From contig OZ176055.1 of the NCBI GenBank assembly GCA_964247055.1, positions 6,510,001-6,574,000 of the forward strand: DNA of 64,000 nt, read 5' to 3'. Below the pieces are notes generated by a model. The model did no database searches, had not been told where the DNA came from, and saw nothing but the letters and a program-made list of their open reading frames with translations. Position numbers and translations under genes: made by a program. This DNA comes from Paragordius varius (lineage: Eukaryota > Animalia > Nematomorpha). This document shows positions 6,988 to 56,800 of the stretch, piece by piece. Each line of letters opens with the position of its first letter. Position 1 is the first letter of the stretch.

Positions 6988-7551
6988 ATGTCGGCGGGTT
7001 ATGATTTTCATCACCGGGAACGTGTTGCTCAAAATTACAAAGATAGGTTTAATTAATTATAATTAATTAGTGTTATAACTAAGCGTAAGTTAAAAATTTT
7101 ACTTATCCTTCAAAGTTTATCTTGGACTCTTCTTGTTTTAAAATGTATCGAATCAATATTTGATCGATTCCATGTTCAGTTGCCACCTACACTTGAACTT
7201 TATTTTAATCAAATACCCGAAGCCGCAAATTGGGAATTGATGCTCTTAATATCCATAATTCCAATATTATTCGGTTACGCCTCATTATCTCATAATAATA
7301 AACGTTTCCTCTATGTCTATATATTTGGAATAATATTTTTTTCCTTACTACCATTATCAGCTGCATTTTTCATAGATGTTCCAAATTTAAAATTGTATTT
7401 AACCCATAAAGTTGGTGCAAAATTTTATAATTATCCTCTCATATTAATAAAATATTTATATTTGTTTTTTAACTTGCAATTTGATTTATTATCAATATTT
7501 TATTCATACACACTTTCTACCTATTGGACAAATACTAAAAAATATAAATAA
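6988..7551 (+). CDS. JAGN1: Jagunal homolog (ER membrane protein), 179 aa; join(6988..7046,7071..7551)
   Basis: MSAGYDFHHRERVAQNYKD|SVITKRKLK matches the jagunal DFxHRERVAxHY motif. WE...SIIPILFG...NN segment, four hydrophobic segments and a C-terminal dilysine KKYK. One 24-nt GT-AG intron is required; spliced length 540 nt. Confidence 0.9.
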
Positions 7552-7693
7552 TAATTTTTATTGATATTATACATTATATTTATAAAACATGACAAATATT
7601 GTGATATTACGCAAAACAGAGGGCCTACCTTTGTTTTTTCCAGGTAGATATACCTGCAAACGAATAACATATGATATTGAAAATATTGATTTT

Positions 7694-10600
7694 ATGCTAA
7701 AGTTTTGGTTGGTGATTTTATTGCGCTTCATTACCTGGATTAGGTCTGAAAATGGCGAAAGAAATTATTATGTATTTTTTTCTAATAATTTTAGGCATTT
7801 ATTAAGGAAGTTGGTAAACACCTGCCAGAAAATTTAACTTTCTTGAAGTTTGTGTATAATATTTACCGTTTTAGTGATGATTTAATCTTTTGCTTGCAAA
7901 ATGTTAGCGGGTATGTTATACATCAAGAAGTATGTGTAATAGAAAATCAATTGAGGCCCCCAAACTTGGATATTCCGTCCAAAAATGTAAAATAAATAAA
8001 ATTTAATAGAGCATACAGGTTTTTAATGCCAACATTCTCCGGCTTGCAGATTATGCGTGCAAAGTTCTATTTTTTATCAATGTTATAGATTAAAAATAAT
8101 TTAACAGCATGCAATTTTTTAGCCAATTTATGTGTGCTTTATCATTTTACTGATTCCAATATACTTTGCAAAATATATCACGAAATCGAAGCTGTGCATA
8201 CGGCTAGGTATTTATAATATATAATTATTTTTAGTGCGAATCGGAGCATTTTAATGCCTTCTTTGCAATACAACCAACAAATTTCACTGTTAAAAAATTA
8301 TGTAAGCAGATTATTGTGTTTAATACTATTATTTTTTCTCTTTCTTCCTAGTTATATTAAGGTTATATCCTAGAGCTCAATTTCGTTAATAAACTAGAGT
8401 TTTGAAAGTTATTTTAGTTAAAATTTAATTATAAAACATGGTTTCATGTATTAAAGTTATATTTTTCACAGTTTTGTGACTTCAAAAGTCTAAAATTGGT
8501 ACAGCTCCAGAACAGGATTGAAACGAACAGCTGTTAAAATCAAAATATATCAAGTTTTTGCTGGTAAATGTAGCCTAAAAGCTTTTAAAGTTAATTATTT
8601 ACATTTTCTATCCACCTTAGGCTTTTATTGCTAGCGATTTTGAAAAAAATATAGAAAAAATAGCGGCGAAAAAGTTCGAGATGAGGATTTTTTTACATTT
8701 TTTAAAATTTTTTTGGATGCGCCTAAATGGTTAACGAAATTATATTTTTAAATACCACTTGATACAATAAATACTTTTTAAGATATTCAAATTTCAAATC
8801 GCTTTAGGATTTAAAAATACCCCAAAAGGCAATGGAGTTTTAATATAATTTTTTTTAATATTTTTTATGGTATATTTTTAAAATTAAAAATATTATTTTG
8901 TTAGTTTATTGTTTTAATTTGATAAAAATGCTTTTATTCTTTACAGAACTTGTAGAATTGAGATACTACAACCGATTATAACAAACAACCCATTTTCAAA
9001 TCAATGAAATTAAAGAATTGCTTCTTTTAATGTACTATTAACATTAACCATAATACGATTTTCGTTGAAAAAGAAAAAGTAGCAGCGGAAAAGTTTGGAA
9101 TGATAATTTTATAAAAATTGAATCATGCGCCTCAAGGCTAATGAATGCTATGGCTTAATAATTGAAATATAAAATCGCCCCGAGTTACAAAATACCCCAT
9201 GATTTTAACAGTTACTTGTGTTTTATACCCATATAAATCGAAGTTGTTGGATGAGTCTTTTATTACATTATGCCAAACATTTTGAAAACAAACCACCCCT
9301 TTTTAGGGATGTTCTTATTGTTTTAATAAAACATAAAAAGCAAAACTCCTCTATAACTTTAATACTTTTGAAACCATGTACGTCCATAATAAGCTTATTT
9401 AAAAGCCATTTCTTCTACTATTTCATTTGGATACTTCAGAATTTTTTGAAACAATAATACCTTAATAAAAGATTTTATTAATGTTTGGAAATTGGTTAAA
9501 TGAACATATTTTTTCGTTTAGGACCTCAATAATGCCAGGATTATGGTGACAGCTTTTGACATTCATGGGAGAAATTTGGGGGATTTTGAGATAACTTCCA
9601 TACTTTTGTGCCCCTTACCCAACGCATATTTGGCCAATTCCATTTTGAAAATGCATAAATTTTCCACAATCAAAGTATGATTAATTGTGTAATCGTATTA
9701 ATAATTTCACTAAATATAAACGTAGTATTTATAATCCATATATATTTATATAAAGTGTGCAATTCAACCATCAACTATATGGGATGCTCAATTATCTGAT
9801 ATCATATTTTTTGAGCCATGTAATTATTTCTATTTGCATGTTTTTACAAATTTTAACATTTGTGGATTTGTTGATTAAAATATGTATATTAAAAGTATTT
9901 ATTGTGCTATTTTTGTATCTTTGTGTATGATGCTGAAAATTGAATTTTAAAAGTTGTTATATTAAATTTTTTAAGTAAATATTACATATTTATGAAAGTT
10001 GGCTATTTTTTATGAATGTTTAAGTCTTTTATTTATATAGTTAGGTCATTTTACTCATGGAGAATTAAATTTATTAATATATATAGATATATATCTATAT
10101 GTAATATCTGTTATTCCCGATTTCCATATCTCCGATAATCCGCTTTATATTTTTTACAATCAATCAATCAATTTCAGATTTGGTGATCAATGGTAATAAA
10201 AATGCGTTGAATAAAATTCCCATACCTATTTACATAACCAGTCCAATGGGAAAGTATTTAGACAATGTTGCGGACACCAATTCAGTAGTTTTGGGTGAAA
10301 CATTGTCATCTCCAAATCAAATGTTACCTTCAGCACTTGCTACTGATAAAAGCAATATACGAAAACGTTTTACGTCAAGTATGATAAAAATGAGATTATA
10401 TGAAGAATATTTTTTTTTAAAAAAATTATCGTTAAACTTTAGGTCACAGCTTGCGGAGTTTTATCGTTCAATGGTTTAGGCTTAAGTTGTATATTTTATG
10501 GTTTCATAAAATTTCACCATTAAAATGGTACACCGGCGGTTTCGGTATCCCATTTTTTTCAAATGATTTATTTTGGTATTTGTTTGTCACAATAATTGAA

Positions 10601-11281
10601 AAAATTGCAATTGCTATTATTATTTAAAATTTCAATATATATACTGTCCAAATTTAAATATTAAACGGGGAACATTAAATTATTGGTATTATCTAATTTT
10701 AAATTAATTTTATATATATATACCACTTGTACGGTTTTTTGCACCTTATATAAAAAACAATCATTTATTTATTAGATGATATGTCCACAGCATTTACTAA
10801 CATACCTTTTTACCGACGGTTTTTCTTGTATGAAAATATCGCTTCACCAGTTAGCATTACAAAAGGTAGTGTATGTACACTTCTATAATAATTGAATGAA
10901 TTTTTTAATCATAATTACAACTTATTTTGTAGGAGATTCAAATAGTTCACTTTTTGCAAACTCAATCAATAATAATGAATCACGGCAAAGGGTCATTCCA
11001 TTTTATGTTCAGTATGTTAGTCGGATCGATATTCTGTAATATTTAGAATTAATAACTTAAAAATATATTTTTCATTTAATATATTTTTGACTTAATATTC
11101 GAGTGTTATAATTTAAGTATTATTATCCACATACAATAATTTTAAGAATTAATCAACGAGAAACGCCAAATATTTTGTTTATGATTGAATATGACATGCT
11201 CCAATATCGAAATTTTTTCACATCCTCTGGCACGCTTAAAGAAAATCAAAATGCAGTTAAAGTATAAATTTTTAACGAAAA

Positions 11282-11335
<54 letters not shown>

Positions 11336-14300
11336 GTTATCTGCCTATATTGGCCCCGATAGTGGGAATTATATGTCATTATACGCATCACTTTTTTTAA
11401 ATAAAATTCTACTTAATTTCAAATTTCATTAAACATTTAGAATTAATAATAATATTTTAATTGTAAGCATAAAATTAACTCGGCCGAAATTGTTAATAAA
11501 AAAGAAAATAAGACAAGATGAATGTTAGAGAGTTTTCATATAAATAAAGAACATAAAATGATAAAAAACGCGAAATTATCAATTTAAATGGTATCACCAA
11601 TTTATCTTAAGTTTTTATGGTCATTTTTCGAATTATATTTTTATTTTTTTATTTCATTTTTACATTCGACAATTACTTGTAGTAATCGAAAATTTATGTT
11701 TTAAAGAAATCCAATTATTGCTGAATTTAAAGATAATTTTTGTTTTGTATAATCCATAAGACAACTAGTAAGTTTGTGGGAAGATGGTGTTCTAAACTCT
11801 AATGACTAAAACTTTAAAAATAGGACCTTATCCAAAAATCAAGAAATTTTAAGGGAGATCAGCATGAACTAATTAGTTAGTAAGAGGTGTCCATCAAAGC
11901 TCGTTAGAGGGGGTTTCAGGGGTATTCACTGTATATGTTAATTGGAAATCGGACATTTAGCATTAATCATTTTATTAAAATCTATATTTAACAGCAAATA
12001 TATATATGATTACACATATTAAATAATTTTAAAAAAATCCGTGATATGACAGTAAGTTAACGAAAAATAAACATAAAGTAGAAAATTAACTGAAATAATA
12101 TTTTTTCCTGATACTACCATTTAACATGGATTAAGTTTAGTAGTTCAATGTGTATTTTTATTTACTATACACGAACGATTAAACTATTTCAAACAAAAAT
12201 ATTATTTAACAAATATTTTTTTATAATTAATTTTGTGTTGTGACAGACATCCTTAAACATTGATCATGTTTCTAACGCTTTCACCCGCATGATAAATCGA
12301 TCAGCAATCACATTAATTGCCATTATGGCTTGTGCAGTTTGTTTACCATTTGCTTTCCTACGTGTTTGGACTTGGTCTCGTCGTAATACTCATTCTACGA
12401 CAAATTATCATCATCAAACATTTATGGGGCCTGGAACTACAATACCTGTCGGCGGTGATTTAACTCTTCAAAAATCATGTATATCAACTTTTACCAATAT
12501 TGACTTGGAGTGGTTAGTACGATTAATGTTACGGTTTGTTGGTCCGTTTGCCCTGCTTTTGTTTGCCGTGGTTTGGCTTTATTCTATCATCATAGCTCTC
12601 ATGTATAGGGTAAGTTATTGATTTTAATGTCATAAAATATACCATTTAAAATTCAAATTCACCCTTGAACAATTTTAATTCACCCTCAACAATTCAAATT
12701 CACCCTAAAATATTATCTGTTTACGGGCAAATATAACTCATCATTAACATGAAATATATTTTTACGACATTGTTTATTATTTTTTCTGCATTATATTAAT
12801 TTTAAACAGAATTTCATATTTAAAAATATTGTAAAATAAAGGTAATTTTTAATCTAAAATACCTAATTTATTTTAGGGTGAATTTGAATTGTTCGAGGGT
12901 GAATTTGAATTGTTCAAGGTGAATTTGATCGATCAGGGGTTAATTCGAACTAAATGGTATATATTGGCTTGTTGGAATTACATGTATAGTTAAAATAAAG
13001 TTAGATAACATATATTAATATAATAGGTATTATACAGGGATTTTCCAATCAGACACCGTAATTCGAGTTACAGTTGCTTAACTTGTTGTCTCTAGTTCCG
13101 GTTCCAGATATTTTTTAGGGAAAACCATTTCCAAACTTTTTTGAAATCATTTTTTGCCGACAAAGTTCCAAAATACCTGTTAATTACAAATGCGGTTTCT
13201 GTATTAACGACATTTCATAGATAAAACTAATTTAGCGCATAATTATTTACTCACAATTATTATTTAAATATTGAATTCATTGCAAAATATTTTTTACAAG
13301 ATTGTTTTATGAATCGTCTATCTCTATATAAATAAAAAAACTTTCTTTTTTAGGCAAACCTTAGTAATATGCTCTATCCCCTTCCATCACGTTGGCAAGA
13401 ACGCATATTTTATTTGCTTATCATAGTGGCCCTAGCCTTTTTATTCATACACCTCTTGTATCATCTATCGCGTCAAACAAATTATCAGCTCTATTTTATT
13501 GATTGGGAATATGCTATAATTAATACTAATGCCGATGAGCTTGAACAAAATTCTACTACATCTAATTGGAAGGCAAATGAAAACATTAATCAACAAGAAA
13601 AAGGTGAAAACTCTGCCCAAAAGATACCACCCCCCATGGAGAATTTGAATGAGAGCACACCGCAACAAGTAGATGAATCTATAAAGTTGCACAGGAGCAA
13701 AAAATCACACGATCACAAAGTTAAACGGTATATATTATTTGATTTACTTCTCTAGAATAAAATATTGATTTACTCATGTTTTATATGGTATTATTTTTTG
13801 ATCTACTTTAATTGCTTTTTACCAAAATATATTCTCAGTGTTTGAAATCAATTTTTCAGGATGAAGTTTGACATTTTTCAAAGTGTTATGAGCAGAATCT
13901 TTATATTAATATGATATCCTTTTATCTCTAAAAAATGTATAAATTATTTTTGATCTTTCTTTCCCCTTAAAATTCACCATAAACTTGAATGACTTTAGCA
14001 CCAAAAATAAAAGTCGAAAAGACACGCCAGAATCACAAGAACAACCGAATGCGCACTTTGAACCTGGTCATTTAGCGATTGTTAATTCAGCTAGTAATAA
14101 AAATCAATTTTATCAATCCAATCTTGGAACTATGAATGTTGATGAACCATTTAATCCGACGATGTCAAATAAATTTTTACCTCAACACCAACAACAAGCT
14201 TTTCAGCATACACCTTCTCAATACCCCTTCAATAATTTTTCTCCATCATTTAACGCGAATAGTAATACGGGATTTTTGTCAAATTTATTGTCACGATTCA

Positions 14301-17300
14301 ATGTTCAGCCTTCTTCTTCGTATGACAATCGCAGCAAACATATCCCATCTTCTAATTTTCCATATCGAGGAGAATGCAACCCTACACCATATTACACGCA
14401 AAATGTTAATTTTAACAATAATAATACGGGTAATTTGAAAGAATATGCGGATAATATAAAATTTTCTCCTGAGAATTATGGACACCTAAATCAAAATACC
14501 AACAATTCCAATCCTTATGACGCAGGAGATTCAAGGAAGATGAGAAAAACTAAAACGTCTGAACGCGAAAATAGAAATGTGTATCAGGTTAGCTATTATA
14601 TGATTATATTTAAGTATAATGCATTTTAACATTTAATTCCTTTATTAATGCATTTTAATATGCAACTTAAAAATAGATTTGATTATCATGCCCCCTTTTC
14701 CGAAATAAGATTTTACTTTTTAAGATACAACCATTAAAAGATTACCCCCTTACAAATTATAGTATTTTGAAATTTTTACACAATTCATCAATTAGAATAA
14801 TATAACCGTAGATGTGAAATAGTAAAGGGAAGATTAAATTATAAACTTATTTAAAGTTATAACACGTTACAAATATTATTATTAAGGAAATAGGTATAAA
14901 AATTTTAAACTAACAAAAGAAATTTTTATCCAAATTTAATGCAGTGGTTCCCAAAAGGGGGCGTAGAAAAATCTAAGGGGGGAGGCGCGAAAAATTTGGA
15001 GAATTTAATTATAAAATATCACTAGAAACAAAATGTAGTTTAATAAGATTTTAGGTGTAATTTATCATTATTGGTCCCCGATATGCAGAAAATATTTCAG
15101 CTATCGCAGATACAAGGATCTCATCGATTATGATTTTTATAATATTATAATAAGTTTACATTTTTATGAGGGGGGGGGGGGGGGGGGGGGGGCAAAAATG
15201 TATTTTAAATTTGGGGAAGCGTGAACAAAAAAAGGTTGGGAACCACTGGTATAATGTATAATTGATTTAAACTATAACAGAATCACCCTAGGACAAAATC
15301 GACCCCACAATACGCAAACCAAGGATTTATGGAGAGCACTGATGATGATGATAATGTTTTAATTAACGATCCAGCACCTTATAATGGTGCATCAAAACCA
15401 GAAAAAAGCTCTGATAACAAAGAAAAATCCATTGCGGAAACACGTAAAACAAAGCACCATAAGAAAGGTTAATGCATAAAGTTATATTAAAATTTTTTCT
15501 CGTTTATCTGGCAAAAACAATTTGATTCTACATGAGCTAAGCCAATTATCAATATAAGAATAGTTTGATTAAGGATACTGAATTATAATGATAGACCTTT
15601 TGTAACTCTTTCTATGTTCCTCATGTTAAAAATTACTTAAGGTGGCAAAATGGGTCATTACAATAAAATTTTAATCTATTTTGAGGGTGCTTAAAAATTT
15701 TTTATTCGCCATGTATTTGTTTCAAATATCTCTTCCAACAATTAACAGATCATTTGCGAAAAAGAACTCGGCGGCACAAAAATATTAATGATGAGGAAGG
15801 ATCCACAACTCAATCATCTCAACCAAATCCACAATCCAATCCATCGCAATTCATTTATTGCAATAATGCAAGTCGCATTTTGTATAGCATTCATGCTTGG
15901 TGTCGATTACAAACGTATAGGGAAATACCTAACCGAACAATTTTGTTTTTAGGACTCTTTATATTATATGTAAGCCTTTTACCTCGTATCGGAATGTTTT
16001 AAAATGTTTAAGATATACAAGATTAGATGTTCATATATTTTATTAAAATATATTAGAGTTATAATGATGCGGATGATGAAAATATGAGGGAGATATGTTT
16101 TTCACAGTGTTTTATAAATTTTAAATATAATATGTTTAAAACATCCGTTTTATTTTAATAAATATTACGCATTTTTCACAAAAGATGTATAAAATGGTTA
16201 ACATATAAAAAAGCTTTACAAATGGTCGTTCGACTGGTTCATTTATTATTTTTTTAAAAATAATATAATGTTTTCAAAAGTTTTAAAAAATTGTTTTTTA
16301 ACATGATAACGGCGAGACCCTTAAGTATCTTTACACATTTATTCCACATCAAAATTTATTCTATAGTTTTTGGACAATAATCCGAAAGATCATTGCTATA
16401 CTGGAAATAACCCGGCTGGAATTGAAATTACAGCTCACGGTTCTGTGCGTTTAAGATGTATGCCTCAAAGTGGCATCCTACGTTTTGCTATTATTGCAAG
16501 TGTTTATGCATTACTTGCCCTTGTGTTTTGGATTGGACGAAAGCTTTTGCTTTATTTGGTAAATGAAATAATTTTCTAGATGCTTATTAAAACGGAACAT
16601 GAAATTTTTTGGTGATTGGTAGTTTTGTGTTAGTATTATAGATTATTCAGCCTATATCTAATTTTGAAATGTTTTTTACTAAATAATATATTTTGGATTT
16701 TCGCTTAAGAGCATGTAGTTTTTTTTCTATTTTATAAAATATTAATGGGGTCTATTATATATATATATATATATATATATATTAATATACATATTTAGTA
16801 CAACTCCGTTAAAATTCTGAACAAAAATGATTACAAATTGGGCGCCTTAAACAACTTTCTTGATACGTGCAAAACGCTAAATATATCCATATTCATATTG
16901 AAAGAAAGGAATTATGCAATCTATTATCACGCACAAAATACGTTTGGTCGAGCCGATGTCAGTTATGAGGAATACCTTTATCGAATTAGATATAAGAAAG
17001 TACGATGATTACGACACTACATTTTTAGTTTATATGAAAAGGTCCTCTAAATATGTAAAAGAGCAAAAGTTTTTTTTGCATAAAGAGCCGCAATTTAAAA
17101 AGTAAAAATCAAATGATTTTGTTTTATTTTTTTATATAGTTAATAAAAGTAGGATTGTTAAAAACGGGCATTATATAGGCTGCATACGAAAATTTTTGCA
17201 GTAAAAAATGGTTGACTTTTTCTTTTTACATTACGGTTTATTAAACTTTGACTGTTACTTTACATTATATTACGCCGTCTTATATATTTGTATTTTACTA

Positions 17301-19825
17301 TCTAAATAATTAATTTAAGTATCACCAGGTTATGAGTATATGCATTCATATGACCGTGGCTATGATTATTAAAATAATCAATCGTAAAATTTAACGCCCG
17401 ATTTGATTTATTATAAACAATGGTGTTAATAAATTTTATGTACAAATAACGTAAAGTTTTTAAATATTACCAAATTTGGCTTGATTGTTATAAATATGAT
17501 TGAATAATATTAAAAGCAATTTGAACAGTGTACTTCATTTTGTTTCGTGAACGAATAACATAATTTTTTTCTTAAGATGATGACTGCATATAAGCTTGAA
17601 TGACTACATATCTAAAAAGCAATCAGGCCCGTTATTATTTATAACCCTAGGTATCACTATTAAAATAGGTTTTTTAAATAAATAAATTTATATAGCAATA
17701 AACATTTTTATTACACAAGGAAATGATGGCACAACTTAAAATGGTTCGTGATTCCGCCCTTGCAGTTTTAGCTCCTCTCCCCAACTTAGATACGCAGTTG
17801 GATGAAGCCACAACCTATTACAAAGCTATGACAGGTCTCGGCGATCCAAACATAATGTCCATAAGTCCGTCAAAAGCAAGTGGTGTGCAATCAAACATGG
17901 GTGAAGGTATAAAATACAATTATTTTTAACTGTTTTGGATTAAAAGTTTGTTTTCATCGTGATTATATTTGCTTGATTTGCGGATAATTTGATACAAGGT
18001 TGATAAATGTTAGCAAAAATTATAAAACAAGTATTATTCTCCCCTACTTTTCTCTAAAAAATTTGTAAAATTTTATACCAAAATATAAAAGATAAAATGT
18101 TTCGGAATTCTTTGAAATCTAGGTTTTGATTATAAAATTGATTTAGGAAACCCATTTGGTTTCAACAATATTTTTCAATTATTCCATTTTGTTAAAAAAC
18201 TTTTTCGGTTGGGAACCTTGCTTTTGATGATACATTATGATTACTTATTTGTCCTGCATTTAGTTATTATAAATTTTGATAATATTTGGTCAGAGATTTG
18301 AAAATTTTATACTAATTTTACTTAAATAACTAGAAACAGGAGCAAACATAAGTCCCAACAATCAAATGATCCCTTATATGTCATTGGAGATTGGTAAATG
18401 TTACGAAATTTCACTTAGTTTGCCGGCTTGTACTGTAATTAATCAAGCGCTCTTTGCCATTCAACAGGTATATATTATGGTTAAATCGAATTAACTTGGT
18501 ACTTTTTATTAAAAACTTATCGTTTAATTTTAATTGTCCTATTTTTTGTAATAATTCCAACAAATATTAAATATTCTTTTTAAAATAATTCCAATTATTT
18601 CGGATTTTAGCCTTTGATTACCCAATTCTTGTCATTTACTGTCCCTGGTAAGTTGTATGTCTCCCGTAACTCTGTCAATGTGTTGTCTGTTTATTTCGCA
18701 CACATATTATTAATATAATCACTGCTTCTTATATTTTTAATTTCAAAGTGTCTCCTTTTGCATATTGGTTCATCCTAGTGTCATATAATAATCATAAAAT
18801 TGAAATTATGCACAAACGTAAAAACAAAAATTCATATTGTTTTAAAAAGACAACCATATCTTTTTAGCCTTGATTTTTTAATTATAATCGTTTTGTGTTG
18901 CAAAATTTGAATGTCGTTTATATATTTGCGACTTGTATTCATGTAATTTGTGTAGCGCGAAAAAGGAATTCTTTAAATAGTAAATAAAATTGTTTTTTTA
19001 GTGCATACTTTTTGTGTGAATAATATCAATTTTTACTGTATATTCCTGCATATTGAAAGGGTTAAATTTTGTGTAAAATTAAAAAAAGGTTTACAAGACG
19101 ATAATGCCATGTTTGAAAAACGGTTAATGGCTTGGCAGTACACGAACAGTTTAATGGTTGAGTTTTTGAGCGGACGTCTGGCTCCCTACATGTCCTATCA
19201 AATTGTTAATAAAACTTGGTTAGAGCGGATTTTATCATTTGAATCTTTGCAGCCATTAGATGTCTCATATATTTATCCACGTAAGCTTTTTTTGATAAAG
19301 TTAATTTGAAAAAGTTTTGGTCTAAACAATTTTGTAATTCTTTACATTTTCATAAAATATTTTAGTTTTTTATCTTTGGATGAGCATTTAAGTGCTGGAA
19401 ATAATAATTTAGGCTTTTCTTTCGGGCAAAAAAACGTAGTTGAATCTTTTAAATAAAAACACATTGTAAAAATTTAAAAAACCTACTCTATTATATGGCA
19501 AACTTACCCCTATTTAACTAGTTTTATTTTTAATAAATTTATATTTTTGGTAGAATCGGAAAATAATGGTGTAATGAAAAGACTTTTATTATGGGACCAT
19601 CAAATATACTTGTTTGTGCTTGAGTTGTTGATCGTAATATGCATCGATTATGCTACGCTTGGTTTTACACATCATTGGTTTAATGCTCTCTTACCTGGCG
19701 TTTGGATTGCATGTATTTTTGATTGGGTAAACTAGATTTTTATTGCGATATTTGCAATCATATATAATATATTAGCGTTTAATTATCGATTTTTCAACCT
19801 TAATTTTAAACTTTTTGGGTGAATC

Positions 19826-19863
<38 letters not shown>

Positions 19864-19990
19864 ATGAACTATTTAATATGTGTATAATTGTTTGAAAATT
19901 TTAAAATTTTAGTTGATTTGCAAACTGTTGTATTTGGCAAGCAAACGGAACATTTGTGCCAAAACTATGGTGGATTTTAATCTTATTTAA
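7694..19990 (+). CDS. TMEM67: Meckelin (ciliary transition-zone protein), multi-exon
   Basis: Exons with consistent phases: 7694-7771, 7795-7847, 7875-7986, 8010-8063, 8089-8207 (NNLTACNFLANLCV), 8235-8301, ~9523-9675 (TAFDIHG...LLCP), ~10776-10865 (YRRFFLYE), ~12247-12609, 13354-13727 (LP..QER..QT...YFIDWE), 13999-14587, 15281-15467, 15749-15969 (AWCRLQTYREI), 16367-16558 (ILRFAI), 16799-16999 (NFLDTCKTLNISIFIL...YYH), ~19090-19280 (KTWLERIL), ~19550-19727, 19913-19990 (KRNICAKTMVDFNLI*). Some internal exons are unresolved. Confidence 0.9.
11287..11332. repeat. (AT)n microsatellite, representative; others at ~9-32, 16755, 19829, 20015, 24560, 41028, 53704, 61092, 62628
   Basis: Read directly from the sequence. 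Confidence 0.95.
12640..12959. mobile_element. TACC...GGTA MITE family (foldback-like, 21-bp subterminal repeats), in a TMEM67 intron
   Basis: TIR taccattt...aaatggta, arrays of aattcaaattcaccc(ttgaac) at both ends, TA on both flanks. Confidence 0.8.
14942..15248. mobile_element. hAT-Buster MITE (307 bp) in a TMEM67 intron
   Basis: Perfect TIR cagtggttcccaa / ttgggaaccactg. Flanks atttaatg / gtataatg (nnnTAnnn, 2 mismatches). Internal G23 run. Confidence 0.85.
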
Positions 19991-40438: not shown

Positions 40439-41024
40439 ATGAACCGATTAGTTTATGTGGCTGGAGGTAGTGGATTTATTGGCAAACACTTATGCAATAA
40501 GCTTATTGAACTTGGTTATGAACCATGTTTAATAACTCGCACAAAACAGGACTTACATAAATACATTTTATGGAATGACTTAGAAAAATTAAAAGACTGC
40601 CATGCTGTTATTGGCCTACAAGGTCAAAATATAATGGGTATATTTATTAACAATTAATTTTAGATTTATCGCGACGATGGAATAAGGAGTTTGAAAAAGA
40701 TTTATATGATAGCCGCATAAACACAACTAAAAAATTGGTAAAAGCAATACAAAATATTAAAACAAACATCTTTATATCATCGTCTGCGATAGGAATATAC
40801 GAACCAGAAGTATCCAAAACATATGATGAATCCTACAAATCTGATGTTAATTATAGTTCCCTTTCTGACTTCAAAGGCAAAGAAATTTTATCTTTAGCTA
40901 AAATGTGTCACGATTGGGAAGATGCGGCCATTACTAACAACGTAAATTCTACAATATTGATATTGAATTTTTTTCAATTATCCATTTCTATATATACCGT
41001 CAACCGGTTTTTTGATTGGTTTAA

Positions 41025-41066
<42 letters not shown>

Positions 41067-53744: not shown

Positions 53745-53820
53745 AAGATTATTACCTAAACCATATTTTACAAGGCACATACTTGATCTTTATTTGTTAG
53801 GTTTACATTTAAATTTGGAC

Positions 53821-56800
53821 ATGGATTTTTTGGACAAATGTTTTTTTTGTAATTCGAATTACAAATATACTTGCCCAAGCTGCAAAGCCAATTATTGTAG
53901 TTTGGCATGTTTTAAATCTCCTGAACATGGAAATTGTTCTGAAACATTTTATAAAGCTTGTGTAATGAAGGAGATGAATCTAAATCCTGACGAGTATAAT
54001 TATGCTTTTTATATTAGTTCAAATGATAATAAAGTTGCTTTTGACTATTTAAAATCGTGTAAAAATGAGTTAAAAGCTGAAACTACTTATAATTCCGACT
54101 TTAGTGAAGAACTCCAAGCTGAAATTGGTGAAGGTTTTATATCATATTTTAATTTTAGATAATGACGAAGACGATTTACATTATAGGATGAAGAATGTAA
54201 ATTTAGGTAGTCATTTAAATTTATTTGAGATAATTTCGAGGAAGTTTGGAATAATTTGACAGAGGATGAGCGTGCCATGTTTGAAAAAAGTTTAAAAAGT
54301 GTGGACAAAAATTGGATTTCTGAAATCATCCCTCTTTGGACCCCGTGGTGGACCAAATTAGTTAAATAATTTTTATTATATTTTATCTAATAAACCACCT
54401 ATATGGATTTTAAATATACTCCCTAAAAAATTTTCAATAATATTGATAGTTTTTTTAAATTATCACTCTTTAAATTAATATATATGAGAATTTCAATCAT
54501 ATATCAATATTTTACAGATATCGCAAAAAGTCCTTTTGGATTCCCAATCAACACAAACACTAATCAAGGATTATGGGATACCGCCAATTTTATCCCTTTC
54601 TCGTTTGCCCGATATATCCAATATTAAAGTTGAGATTTTTAAATTATTTTAGACATCTCCAAATTTAATATATAATGTGATCAATACATGCCTGGCCTAT
54701 GCTTATGTTACACGACTGTTTAATGGAGATTATATGGAATATGCTTTACAAACACTAGAGGTTTGTTAATTAAATATATTTTTAATTTTTTTATCTTAAC
54801 ATATAAAAATTATATTGTTATGTACAAATCAAACAATGGATGGTTAATACTATTTCTTTGAAAATATTCACCATTTTACTAAATAAGCTTTTCTGATATG
54901 GAATTATAATTGGTTTGGGTAATTATAGTCGTTATAAATCTTTTTTGGTACTTAAGCCGTATATCACATTGTCAATAAAAGCTCTTACACTATATTTTGA
55001 AATATTCAATTTATATTATTAGATATCTATGAAATTAAATATATGAATTTTTTGTCTTGATGTACAAATATTTATTGTATATTAAATTGGATATTTTGAC
55101 ATTTTGGTATTTTCTTCTTGTTGGATCTACGATAAAATGTTGAAAAATTGATCTTCATATCTCAAACAATTAAATACATGCATGGATTTATTACCAATTT
55201 TTTGAAATTTATGAGTGCTGCTTGTAACACTGCCCTTTATTTCTCGGTTAACTGTTGGTATTATTAGGAATGCTATTTAATTTTTTATTATAAGTGGTCT
55301 CCCTGTACTGTTAATCGAATAGACGACGGTATTAACAAAAACTATTTTTTTTCCAAGCCTCTACCATTTTACATGGATTGTTATTCATTTTGATTTTCAT
55401 TTTTTTTATAATAAAAAAAGTTTTTTTATAGATTATGAATGAACTTTGTTCGTTTATGAGGGAGGAGTCATTTACATATACATCAGTTTCACAAGCCATG
55501 TATGGTACTTTGATGAAATTGTTGGAGGTAAAATTGTGTACATATTATGATATGTTATGTTAAAATTCGATTAGGTTTTTTAATTTAAGTCATATGATAA
55601 TATAATTTTTTTTTCGATTAATTTGTTGTTAAAAAGAGTTAAAATAACTTGGTTTATATATTGTTGTTTTTACGCGTAAAACTTATGTCGTTAAATTTTG
55701 CATGACTATAATAATCAAAAAAATAATAGTTACTTAAAAAATTTTAACGTTTCTTTTATATTCTAATATATGAAGATTTGAGATAAATTTTGGATGTTCC
55801 ATCTAAATAAATAAATTAATGAATCTGCCTAATATTCTAGATTGAATATCATTCAAAAATAATTCCAATTTACATTTTATTAGGTTGAGGAACGAGATAA
55901 TAGTATAAAAGAAACTTTCAGATCACAAGACAAGAAAACTTGTCCATTAACATCATCATCCAAAGTTATTGAGGTAAATGAAAAAGTTGTTCAAAATCAA
56001 TTTTTATTGTCAAATTCTGTATCTTGCATAAAAAATGATGACAATAAAACTCCCTGTCTAGACTCACATTTTATTCGTAATTTTACGGATACATTAATAC
56101 CAGACCTGATTGCGTTGCTAGAAGGCCCGAGCGATGTACCATATCCCCGTACAAAAAACATTGTTTCCAGTAAAATTTTATTGATTGATTAGTTTAAATC
56201 GTATATTTATATAGAAGTTTTTAATTAAACGTTTTCGGTGAAAAATTGTAAGTCACATTTCGAAATTTTAAGTCGTTTTACTTTTTTGAATAGCTATTAA
56301 GTCTTGACTATCTTTACGCGGCGTTTTTTGTGATTGTAAGAACTTCACTTAGTAATTTATACTAAAGGGTTAAATTATAGAGCAGTTTTTGCTACTTGGG
56401 AGATATGATATCAGCCGGTGGCGGAATAGAACACGCAACTTAACATCGCATATCACAAATGTGGAAAAAATACCATTCGTTAAATTAATAATAATTAATA
56501 AATTCGTCAAACTACAAACTAAATGTGCCATATACACTACAGCCATCCGTCCCGTCCTCACATATAGATCCGAATCCTTGCCGATGTCAAAAACAAATGA
56601 ATCCAAACTCATAAACGCTGAATCCAAATTATTGAAAACAATATTATTCGCACACAATCCTTCTAAATTCAATTATACCGAATCCATAAACCCGTACCAT
56701 ATACTCAATCTCAACCCCATCAACAACGTCGAAAAATCCGGTTACAATGGGCTGGACATGTTGAAAGACGGCAAGATACTCTCACATTCTTAAAGCTATG

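Follow-up and report, generated by a model that had tools for sequence, protein, structure and literature searches.

At the 5' end of a gene for TMEM67 (meckelin), five introns of only 23-27 nucleotides (nt) are predicted in the 64,000-nt stretch of DNA analysed here (the window, C6:6510001-6574000), which belongs to the 110.6-megabase assembly of 44 contigs that was searched as the genome. Judging from sequence comparison, these segments are likely U2-type GT-AG spliceosomal introns of the ordinary kind, reduced to this size and clustered in the first 541 nt of an intact meckelin coding region. The five lie in a row, and none is found among the later introns that could be placed in the gene, which measure 70-1,220 nt.

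The TMEM67 gene extends from a proposed ATG to a TAA stop on the forward strand (7694..19990), on which all TMEM67, JAGN1 and SDR39U1 features given below are located. It was delineated by three exons with Pfam Meckelin matches, and by tblastn and spliced alignment to the TMEM67 of a Gordionus hairworm. The Meckelin matches are at 8089-8207 (profile positions 75-109, 25.9 bits), 13369-13755 (positions 429-498) and 16799-17005 (positions 592-633), and a six-frame search of the whole genome for Meckelin returned this locus alone. Collinear tblastn pieces of the Gordionus protein span 7876 to 19987, and the gene terminates at TAA 19988-19990 with a C-terminus that is common to Gordionus. By this comparison, the gene is intact, with its exons collinear to the TAA stop. 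The searched databases contain a single relative of the gene, namely TMEM67 from Gordionus sp. m RMFG-2023 (CAK9303264.1, XP_065322019.1), which is 70% identical in the best exon; an exhaustive profile search and a word-indexed database search with TMEM67 gave nothing beyond the Gordionus cluster. Judged by TMEM67, the nearest relative of the animal in the window is a gordiid hairworm. The GC content of the window is 23-31% (per 2 kilobases, kb), and that of the Gordionus hairworm genome is 26.9% (10.1101/2023.06.26.546503). A search of the PDB with the 39-residue exon gave chance matches only, and the pieces of 18-22 residues gave no scorable Pfam match.

All five segments are found where a preliminary description of this DNA had placed them; each begins with GT and ends with AG, and their lengths are 23, 27, 23, 25 and 27 nt. 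Introns 3, 4 and 5 are well supported by the comparison. Exon 3 (7875..7986) reads DDLIFC...ENQ...SKN and aligns to NNLSRC...ENQ...SKS of Gordionus, and the alignment fixes the donor of micro-intron 3 (7987-8009, 23 nt, GTAAAA...AATAG, GTAAAATAAATAAAATTTAATAG), whose read-through frame has a TAA. A micro-exon of 54 nt (8010..8063, SIQVFNANILRLADYACK) follows in a frame that differs from those of both neighbours. The terminal TAG of micro-intron 4 (8064-8088, 25 nt, GTTCTA...TATAG, GTTCTATTTTTTATCAATGTTATAG) is a stop in the read-through frame. Exon 5 (8089..8207) carries the NLTAC..LANLCV block, which had been described as conserved and indeed coincides with positions 75-109 of Pfam Meckelin. 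Micro-intron 5 (8208-8234, 27 nt, GTATTT...TTTTAG, GTATTTATAATATATAATTATTTTTAG) has an in-frame TAA and the sole possible donor; a Meckelin profile match of positions 74-134 spans it, crossing one TAA. In exon 6 (8235..8301), the frame and the profile match go on to position 134, and the donor at 8302 is GTAAGC. Provided that the start is correctly placed, four of the five introns are needed to keep the frame, as had been claimed, since introns 1, 3 and 4 shift the frame and intron 5 contains the in-frame TAA; only 7848-7874 is optional.

All GT-AG solutions that leave the frames open were enumerated. A single solution joins the frame of the micro-exon to the NLTAC frame at intron 4. For intron 5, a single donor can be combined with either of two acceptors, giving 27 nt, or 39 nt with the acceptor at 8246. 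In intron 3, the donor at 7987 pairs with an acceptor at 8009 (23 nt) or 8018 (32 nt), and there is also a 35-nt variant, 7977-8011. The coordinates used here are those of the preliminary description, which are the first AG in each case.

The micro-exon was tested by homology using a custom protein-to-DNA aligner with intron states, in which the Gordionus protein was compared with the raw DNA and no pre-joined model was supplied. When introns of at least 15 nt were allowed, the aligner chose 8064-8088 exactly, together with the donor at 7987 (acceptor 8018), at a score of 144. When introns below 35 nt were forbidden, it returned a single 102-nt intron, 7987-8088, at a score of 113. The gain of 31 units is due to the inclusion of the micro-exon. 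The 102-nt intron is a stop-free, frame-preserving GT-AG solution, and it stands for a different way of splicing this region: the micro-exon would be skipped, the first two segments would not be introns, translation would start elsewhere, and one or two introns below 30 nt would be left. We regard this as unlikely. Although exons 1 and 2 are without homology support, skipping the micro-exon costs the 31 alignment units and loses a block with a cysteine that is conserved from human to hairworm, and intron 5 would remain at 27 or 39 nt even then.

The position of the micro-exon match adds to its weight. The end of the micro-exon, LRLADYACK, lies flush against IKNNLTAC, just as LKAADSECR lies against YKNNITAC in Gordionus. 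In an end-anchored ungapped comparison, 10 of 48,277 stop-free 18-mers from 264 kb score as well (anchored p of about 2e-4; unanchored, the p for the match is about 0.01). An HMMER alignment of the Gordionus stretch with human meckelin (7fh1_A) reads LQSSAAACWVYANLTSC and shows the L..A...C block directly before KNN(L/I)TAC. This block is old, because human meckelin shares it with Gordionus.

The case for introns 1 and 2 is a different one: nothing upstream of 7876 could be aligned to Gordionus in the spliced alignment, and they rest on the reading frames, on the lack of an ATG in the frame from 7795 to 7986 and on how well they match the splice consensus. Exon 1 (7694..7771) is an open frame with an ATG and a hydrophobic, signal-peptide-like start (MLKFWLVILLRFITWI...), and exon 2 (7795..7847) is likewise an open frame that is not alignable to Gordionus. 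The plausible micro-intron 1 (7772-7794, 23 nt, GTATTT...TTTTAG, GTATTTTTTTCTAATAATTTTAG) is required for joining exon 2 to the sole ATG-bearing frame upstream; the frame of exon 1 meets that of 7795 only when 23 nt are taken out, although an alternative acceptor at 7806 would give 35 nt. No ATG occurs in the downstream frame from 7795 to 7986. By this logic of reading frame and start codon, intron 1 is probable. Micro-intron 2 (7848-7874, 27 nt, GTTTGT...TTTTAG, GTTTGTGTATAATATTTACCGTTTTAG) is a multiple of three and stop-free, hence optional, and homology fails to separate its splicing from its retention. However, it fits the TTTTAG acceptor consensus, and it is probably spliced, though superfluous for the frame. 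From motif frequencies, the chance of a GT...TTTTAG pair of 21-29 nt in the 192-nt stretch 7795-7986 is estimated at about 0.05-0.1. If translation started elsewhere, as the skipping of the micro-exon would have it, the ATG-less frame from 7795 would still require some joined upstream exon. The stop codon of JAGN1 (7549-7551), on the same strand, is just 143 nt before the proposed ATG.

As to the start itself, the ATG at 7752 belongs to another frame, and the frame that ends at 7771 opens at the ATG at 7694 or at that at 7589. The latter, only 38 nt past the JAGN1 stop, was considered less likely than 7694. Upstream of the proposed ATG, a strong pyrimidine tract with CAG (tttgttttttccag) ends at about 7643 and could be a trans-splice site or the acceptor of an intron in the 5' untranslated region. 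An upstream reading frame of 9 codons begins at 7671.

Tiny introns are also predicted in neighbouring genes. Pfam Jagunal matches JAGN1 over positions 12-186 as one piece that passes through two TAA. These belong to a 24-nt segment (7047..7070). When the two JAGN1 exons are searched apart, the 5' exon corresponds to Jagunal positions 12-28 and the 3' exon to 32-186, and the three junction residues are positions 29-31. Because the Jagunal positions run without a gap over the junction, the 24 nt at 7047-7070 are outside the protein. A database search with the JAGN1 exon gave no match. In SDR39U1, TIGR01777 matches over positions 1-70 as far as 40636, and a match in a different frame takes up positions 71-148 from 40669. 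Since the profile positions continue without a gap in this other frame, the frame-shifting 26 nt between them (40638..40663) would be removed. As far as homology reaches, introns of 24-26 nt thus appear to exist in this genome. ZNHIT2, which has a zf-HIT domain in the exon 53818-54132, contains two candidates, 54134-54158 (25 nt) and 54629-54652 (24 nt). Both end in TTTTAG and have open frames on both sides, which is the only evidence for them. The second ZNHIT2 candidate lies about 800 nt past the start, so that not every tiny intron would be within 550 nt of an ATG. The preliminary description had counted about 12 tiny introns in the window; besides the TMEM67 cluster, those of JAGN1 and SDR39U1 are upheld by profile continuity, and the two in ZNHIT2 are only plausible. 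A further 200 kb of the contig gave candidates beside cullin-like, macro-domain, PP4R3-like and RILP-like genes; without a profile across their junctions, these could not be fixed.

The same two genes bear on whether these segments are spliced at all. Stops might be read as sense codons at TAA and TAG, or the ribosome might shift or bypass, so that the frame, which is the same ahead of intron 3 and behind intron 4, would be read through. Introns 3 and 4 together with the micro-exon make 102 nt, a multiple of three, and the only stops in that frame are TAA and TAG. However, TAA is a stop codon here, since the JAGN1 frame closes with it exactly where the match has reached position 186 of the 187 in the Jagunal profile; TMEM67 also terminates at TAA, at its common C-terminus. 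The profile coordinates pass over the 24-nt and 26-nt segments without a gap, and the SDR39U1 intron as well as TMEM67 introns 1, 3 and 4 shift the frame. Furthermore, in comparison with the orthologue, the peptide read through 7996-8085 reaches a score of 12 and the micro-exon one of 23. Translation without splicing is extremely unlikely on these grounds. A reassignment of stop codons as in the ciliate-type code was rejected, as TAA terminates both JAGN1 and TMEM67 and the stop-bearing segments are missing from the profile alignments.

The stops and frame shifts could instead be chance lesions, lying between a GT and an AG, in a TMEM67 pseudogene that decays in a lineage which has lost its cilia. 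Meckelin is a ciliary transition-zone protein, and Nematomorpha are described in a passage of PMC12094185, citing Cunha et al. 2023, as being without most ciliary genes. In six-frame profile searches of this genome, neither a B9-C2 domain (PF07162) nor IFT57 (PF10498) was matched, although these are weak negatives. A pseudogene is nevertheless very unlikely. More than 1,000 downstream codons are open and collinear with Gordionus to the common C-terminus and stop, and each supposed lesion is an AT-rich segment of 23-27 nt with a TAG end. Identical features occur in the non-ciliary genes JAGN1 and SDR39U1, and Gordionus has kept a full-length TMEM67. Meckelin is intact both here and in Gordionus, and it may have been retained for a non-ciliary role.

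The splice signals of the tiny introns were compared in two sets, one of seven introns (TMEM67, JAGN1 and SDR39U1) and one of nine that adds the two unverified ZNHIT2 candidates. A bare GT..AG pair is not rare in DNA of 27% GC, and it is the extended signal and the homology that surpass chance. TAG ends all seven introns and, with ZNHIT2, all nine; in 264 kb, a T precedes 30% of the AG dinucleotides (p = 2e-4 for the seven). TTTTAG ends four of the seven against a background of 3.2% (p = 3e-5), and six of the nine. The GC content of the tiny introns is 7-26%, whereas that of the flanking 40 bases is 30-44%. An A is present at +13 from the 5' end in seven of the nine, in a small sample and with a post hoc, uncorrected p of 0.017, and CTAAT, TCAAT, TTAAC and TATAAT are yUnAy-like branch candidates. 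Retention would give a premature stop in eight of the nine introns.

Signs of the major spliceosome are present in the genome. There is a full-length gene for U1 small nuclear RNA (snRNA) with the 5' end ACUUACCUG (124 bits), and one for U2 snRNA with GUAGUA (178 bits), both canonical in their pairing regions. By contrast, none of the five TMEM67 introns has the ATATCC/GTATCC donor or the TCCTTAAC branch site of U12-type introns. Matches to these snRNAs are numerous: U1 has 17 (from 124 to 31 bits), most of them within one cluster of 70 kb, and U2 has 46 (from 178 to 38 bits), with U1/U2 loci at C6:565000-634000 and C3:257000-528000. The multiple copies may be variant snRNAs or pseudogenes.

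The remainder of TMEM67 is built differently. The first long intron starts 67 nt after the last tiny one; it is 1,220 nt in length (8302-9521, GTAAGC...GTTTAG), is in phase 0 on both sides, and is followed by an exon from 9522 that aligns to Gordionus residues 213-262. At least 13 later introns were placed in all. The others are 9675-9755 (81 nt), 9820-10177 (358 nt), 10866-10935 (70 nt), 11036-11146 (111 nt), 11262-12246 (985 nt), 12610-13353 (744 nt), 15970-16366 (397 nt), 16559-16798 (240 nt), 18468-18610 (143 nt), 18648-19088 (441 nt), 19281-19553 (273 nt) and 19727-19912 (186 nt). Junctions are uncertain in the low-complexity middle of the gene (13.7-15.8 kb and 17.0-18.3 kb). The donors of the two sizes differ: T is at +3, giving a GTT start, in five of the nine tiny introns, whereas the 13 longer introns of TMEM67 have no T there (Fisher p = 0.005), and GTAAG is the donor of none of the nine and of five of the 13. 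Of the two intron classes that had been proposed earlier, the two very different sizes are thus seen in one gene, at 23-27 nt and 70-1,220 nt and with different donors; that the spliceosome removes the tiny segments is what we infer from their sequences.

If the tiny introns are spliced in this way, the major spliceosome would recognize each of them as a unit, that is, by intron definition. The donor would be minimal, a GU followed by A or U, and the branch adenosine would be located about 13 nt from the 5' end. The acceptor would be a short, nematode-like (U)UUUAG, of which the first AG would be used. Retention of four of the five TMEM67 introns would lead to a premature stop or a frame shift, and hence the unspliced RNA would be non-productive. 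The introns of 70-1,220 nt, which have stronger donors (GTA/GTAAG), would be part of the same pre-mRNA.

Several points weigh against this reading. Human and yeast spliceosomes demand a distance from the 5' splice site to the branch far above about 13 nt. Only one close orthologue is present in the searched databases, so that the micro-exon test consists of one relative plus human. The alignments offer no counterpart for exons 1 and 2 or for introns 1 and 2, and the start codon of TMEM67 is a predicted one. The acceptors are ambiguous, with 23 or 32 nt for intron 3 and 27 or 39 nt for intron 5. Finally, an ab initio scan for frame-bridging GT..AG pairs (64 kb and 264 kb) found no excess at 20-30 nt over control dinucleotides; the scan is too noisy in AT-rich DNA and misses introns beside short exons, and it neither supports nor refutes the size class.

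Introns of comparable form are found in several distant groups. Nematodes are the sister phylum, and their introns carry a T-run immediately ahead of the AG, with neither a long pyrimidine tract nor a strong consensus at the branch. In C. elegans, introns are short, with a mode of about 47 nt and a TTTTCAG consensus, and the UUUUCAG acceptor is bound directly by U2AF. The T-run before the AG is alike in the tiny introns described here, but these have 23-27 nt and TTTTAG. In ciliates, Paramecium introns are about 25 nt and Stentor introns 15-16 nt; ciliates have only tiny introns, and these two genera use a different genetic code. The size is the same here, and retention would nearly always create a premature stop (eight of nine), as in ciliates. 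However, TAA is a stop in the present genome, and long introns coexist with the tiny ones.

According to Hadjez et al. 2026 (PMC13644364), who also mention Stentor, animal introns below 30 base pairs (bp) occur only in myxobolid Myxozoa and Dicyema. The introns of Dicyema japonicum and the myxobolids are GT-AG with median lengths of 22-27 bp; little more than 'GTa' is left of the donor, U2 is canonical, and weakly conserved A residues are spaced from the 5' end rather than from the AG (PMC13644364). The preliminary description had named dicyemids as the bearers of the shortest animal introns. The size class below 30 nt holds, but the list was incomplete, as the introns of myxobolid Myxozoa are even shorter (PMC13644364). 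The tiny introns described here resemble them in length (23-27 nt), the GTW donor, the A at +13 in seven of nine, and canonical U1 and U2. They differ in four respects. All introns are short in Dicyema and the myxobolids, whereas the 13 placed TMEM67 introns of 70-1,220 nt stand beside five tiny ones. The acceptor there is a bare AG, and here it is TAG in nine of nine and TTTTAG in six of nine. The tiny TMEM67 introns are at the 5' end only, and the phylum is a different one, with a gordiid hairworm as the nearest relative. Hairworms are not mentioned in the main text of Hadjez et al. 2026 (PMC13644364). The word 'intron' is absent from two hairworm genome preprints (10.1101/2023.06.26.546503 and 10.1101/2024.06.11.598342), while a remark in Cunha et al. 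2023 is possible.

The arrangement along the gene is closer to that of flukes. Ershov et al. 2019 (PMC6530080) described a bimodal intron length distribution in Opisthorchis felineus and others, with microintrons that peak at 37 bp (with another peak at 90 bp) and stand beside introns of 3 kb; kilobase introns are present in one and the same gene. They are clustered, favour the 5' end of genes, have lost the polypyrimidine tract, and easily escape annotation programs whose minimum intron is set high (PMC6530080). Adjacent microintrons near the 5' end with long introns downstream are also seen in TMEM67. The coexistence with long introns that the preliminary description had stressed is therefore seen here, but clustered 5' microintrons beside kilobase introns were already known in flukes (PMC6530080). 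In contrast to the fluke peak of 37 bp, the introns here have 23-27 nt. The splice sites of fluke microintrons are nearer to the consensus than those of other introns, whereas the donors here are weaker (GTT in five of nine). Moreover, flukes are lophotrochozoans, and the animal here is an ecdysozoan. The predicted arrangement combines the fluke layout with the dicyemid and myxozoan size, in an ecdysozoan.

Fukumura et al. 2021 (PMC8363638) gave a precedent from human cells for one spliceosome with a second 3' splice-site factor: SPF45/RBM17 takes the place of the U2AF heterodimer in the splicing of short introns with truncated pyrimidine tracts. The human introns are about 50-60 nt, unlike those considered here, and the comparison of factors is by analogy only.

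On balance, the evidence tips slightly toward horsehair worms being a third independent animal lineage with introns below 30 nt. The layout would be a new one, with 5' clusters, GTT/GTA donors, TTTTAG acceptors and kilobase introns in the same pre-mRNA. If this is true, intron size would be set by the position in the transcript and not by genome-wide compaction, and the lower size limit of the animal spliceosome would be reachable in a bilaterian with otherwise normal introns. What sets this limit would in that case be the single intron and where it lies, rather than the streamlining of a whole genome. TMEM67 would be a natural test substrate, in which a 54-nt exon lies between introns of 23 and 25 nt, and the 1.2-kb intron follows the cluster 67 nt on. 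Such a gene would let one ask how the 5' splice site, the branch and the acceptor are read inside 23 nt.

There would also be consequences for annotation. Gene finders and aligners whose minimum intron is set at 20-40 nt would disrupt many hairworm genes at the 5' end. Such broken models, in which genes are cut short or lost, could inflate the 'rampant loss' that is reported for conserved genes of Nematomorpha and could contribute to the low BUSCO scores of the phylum. The genome of Gordionus montsenyensis was annotated with STAR and BRAKER, and its BUSCO completeness is 71.6% (10.1101/2023.06.26.546503). If this species also has introns of 21-27 nt, default minimum intron lengths would break its gene models, the same point that Ershov et al. 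made for flukes.

Two further features of the locus concern its longer segments. A low-complexity insert rich in N, Q, P, K and H is found in TMEM67 behind the FIDWE motif (window 13640-15840). A matching insert is present in Gordionus at about residues 600-860, and human meckelin is without an insert there in the alignment. Long (TA)n microsatellites are located in longer introns, at 11330-11370 in TMEM67 and at 41025-41065 in SDR39U1.

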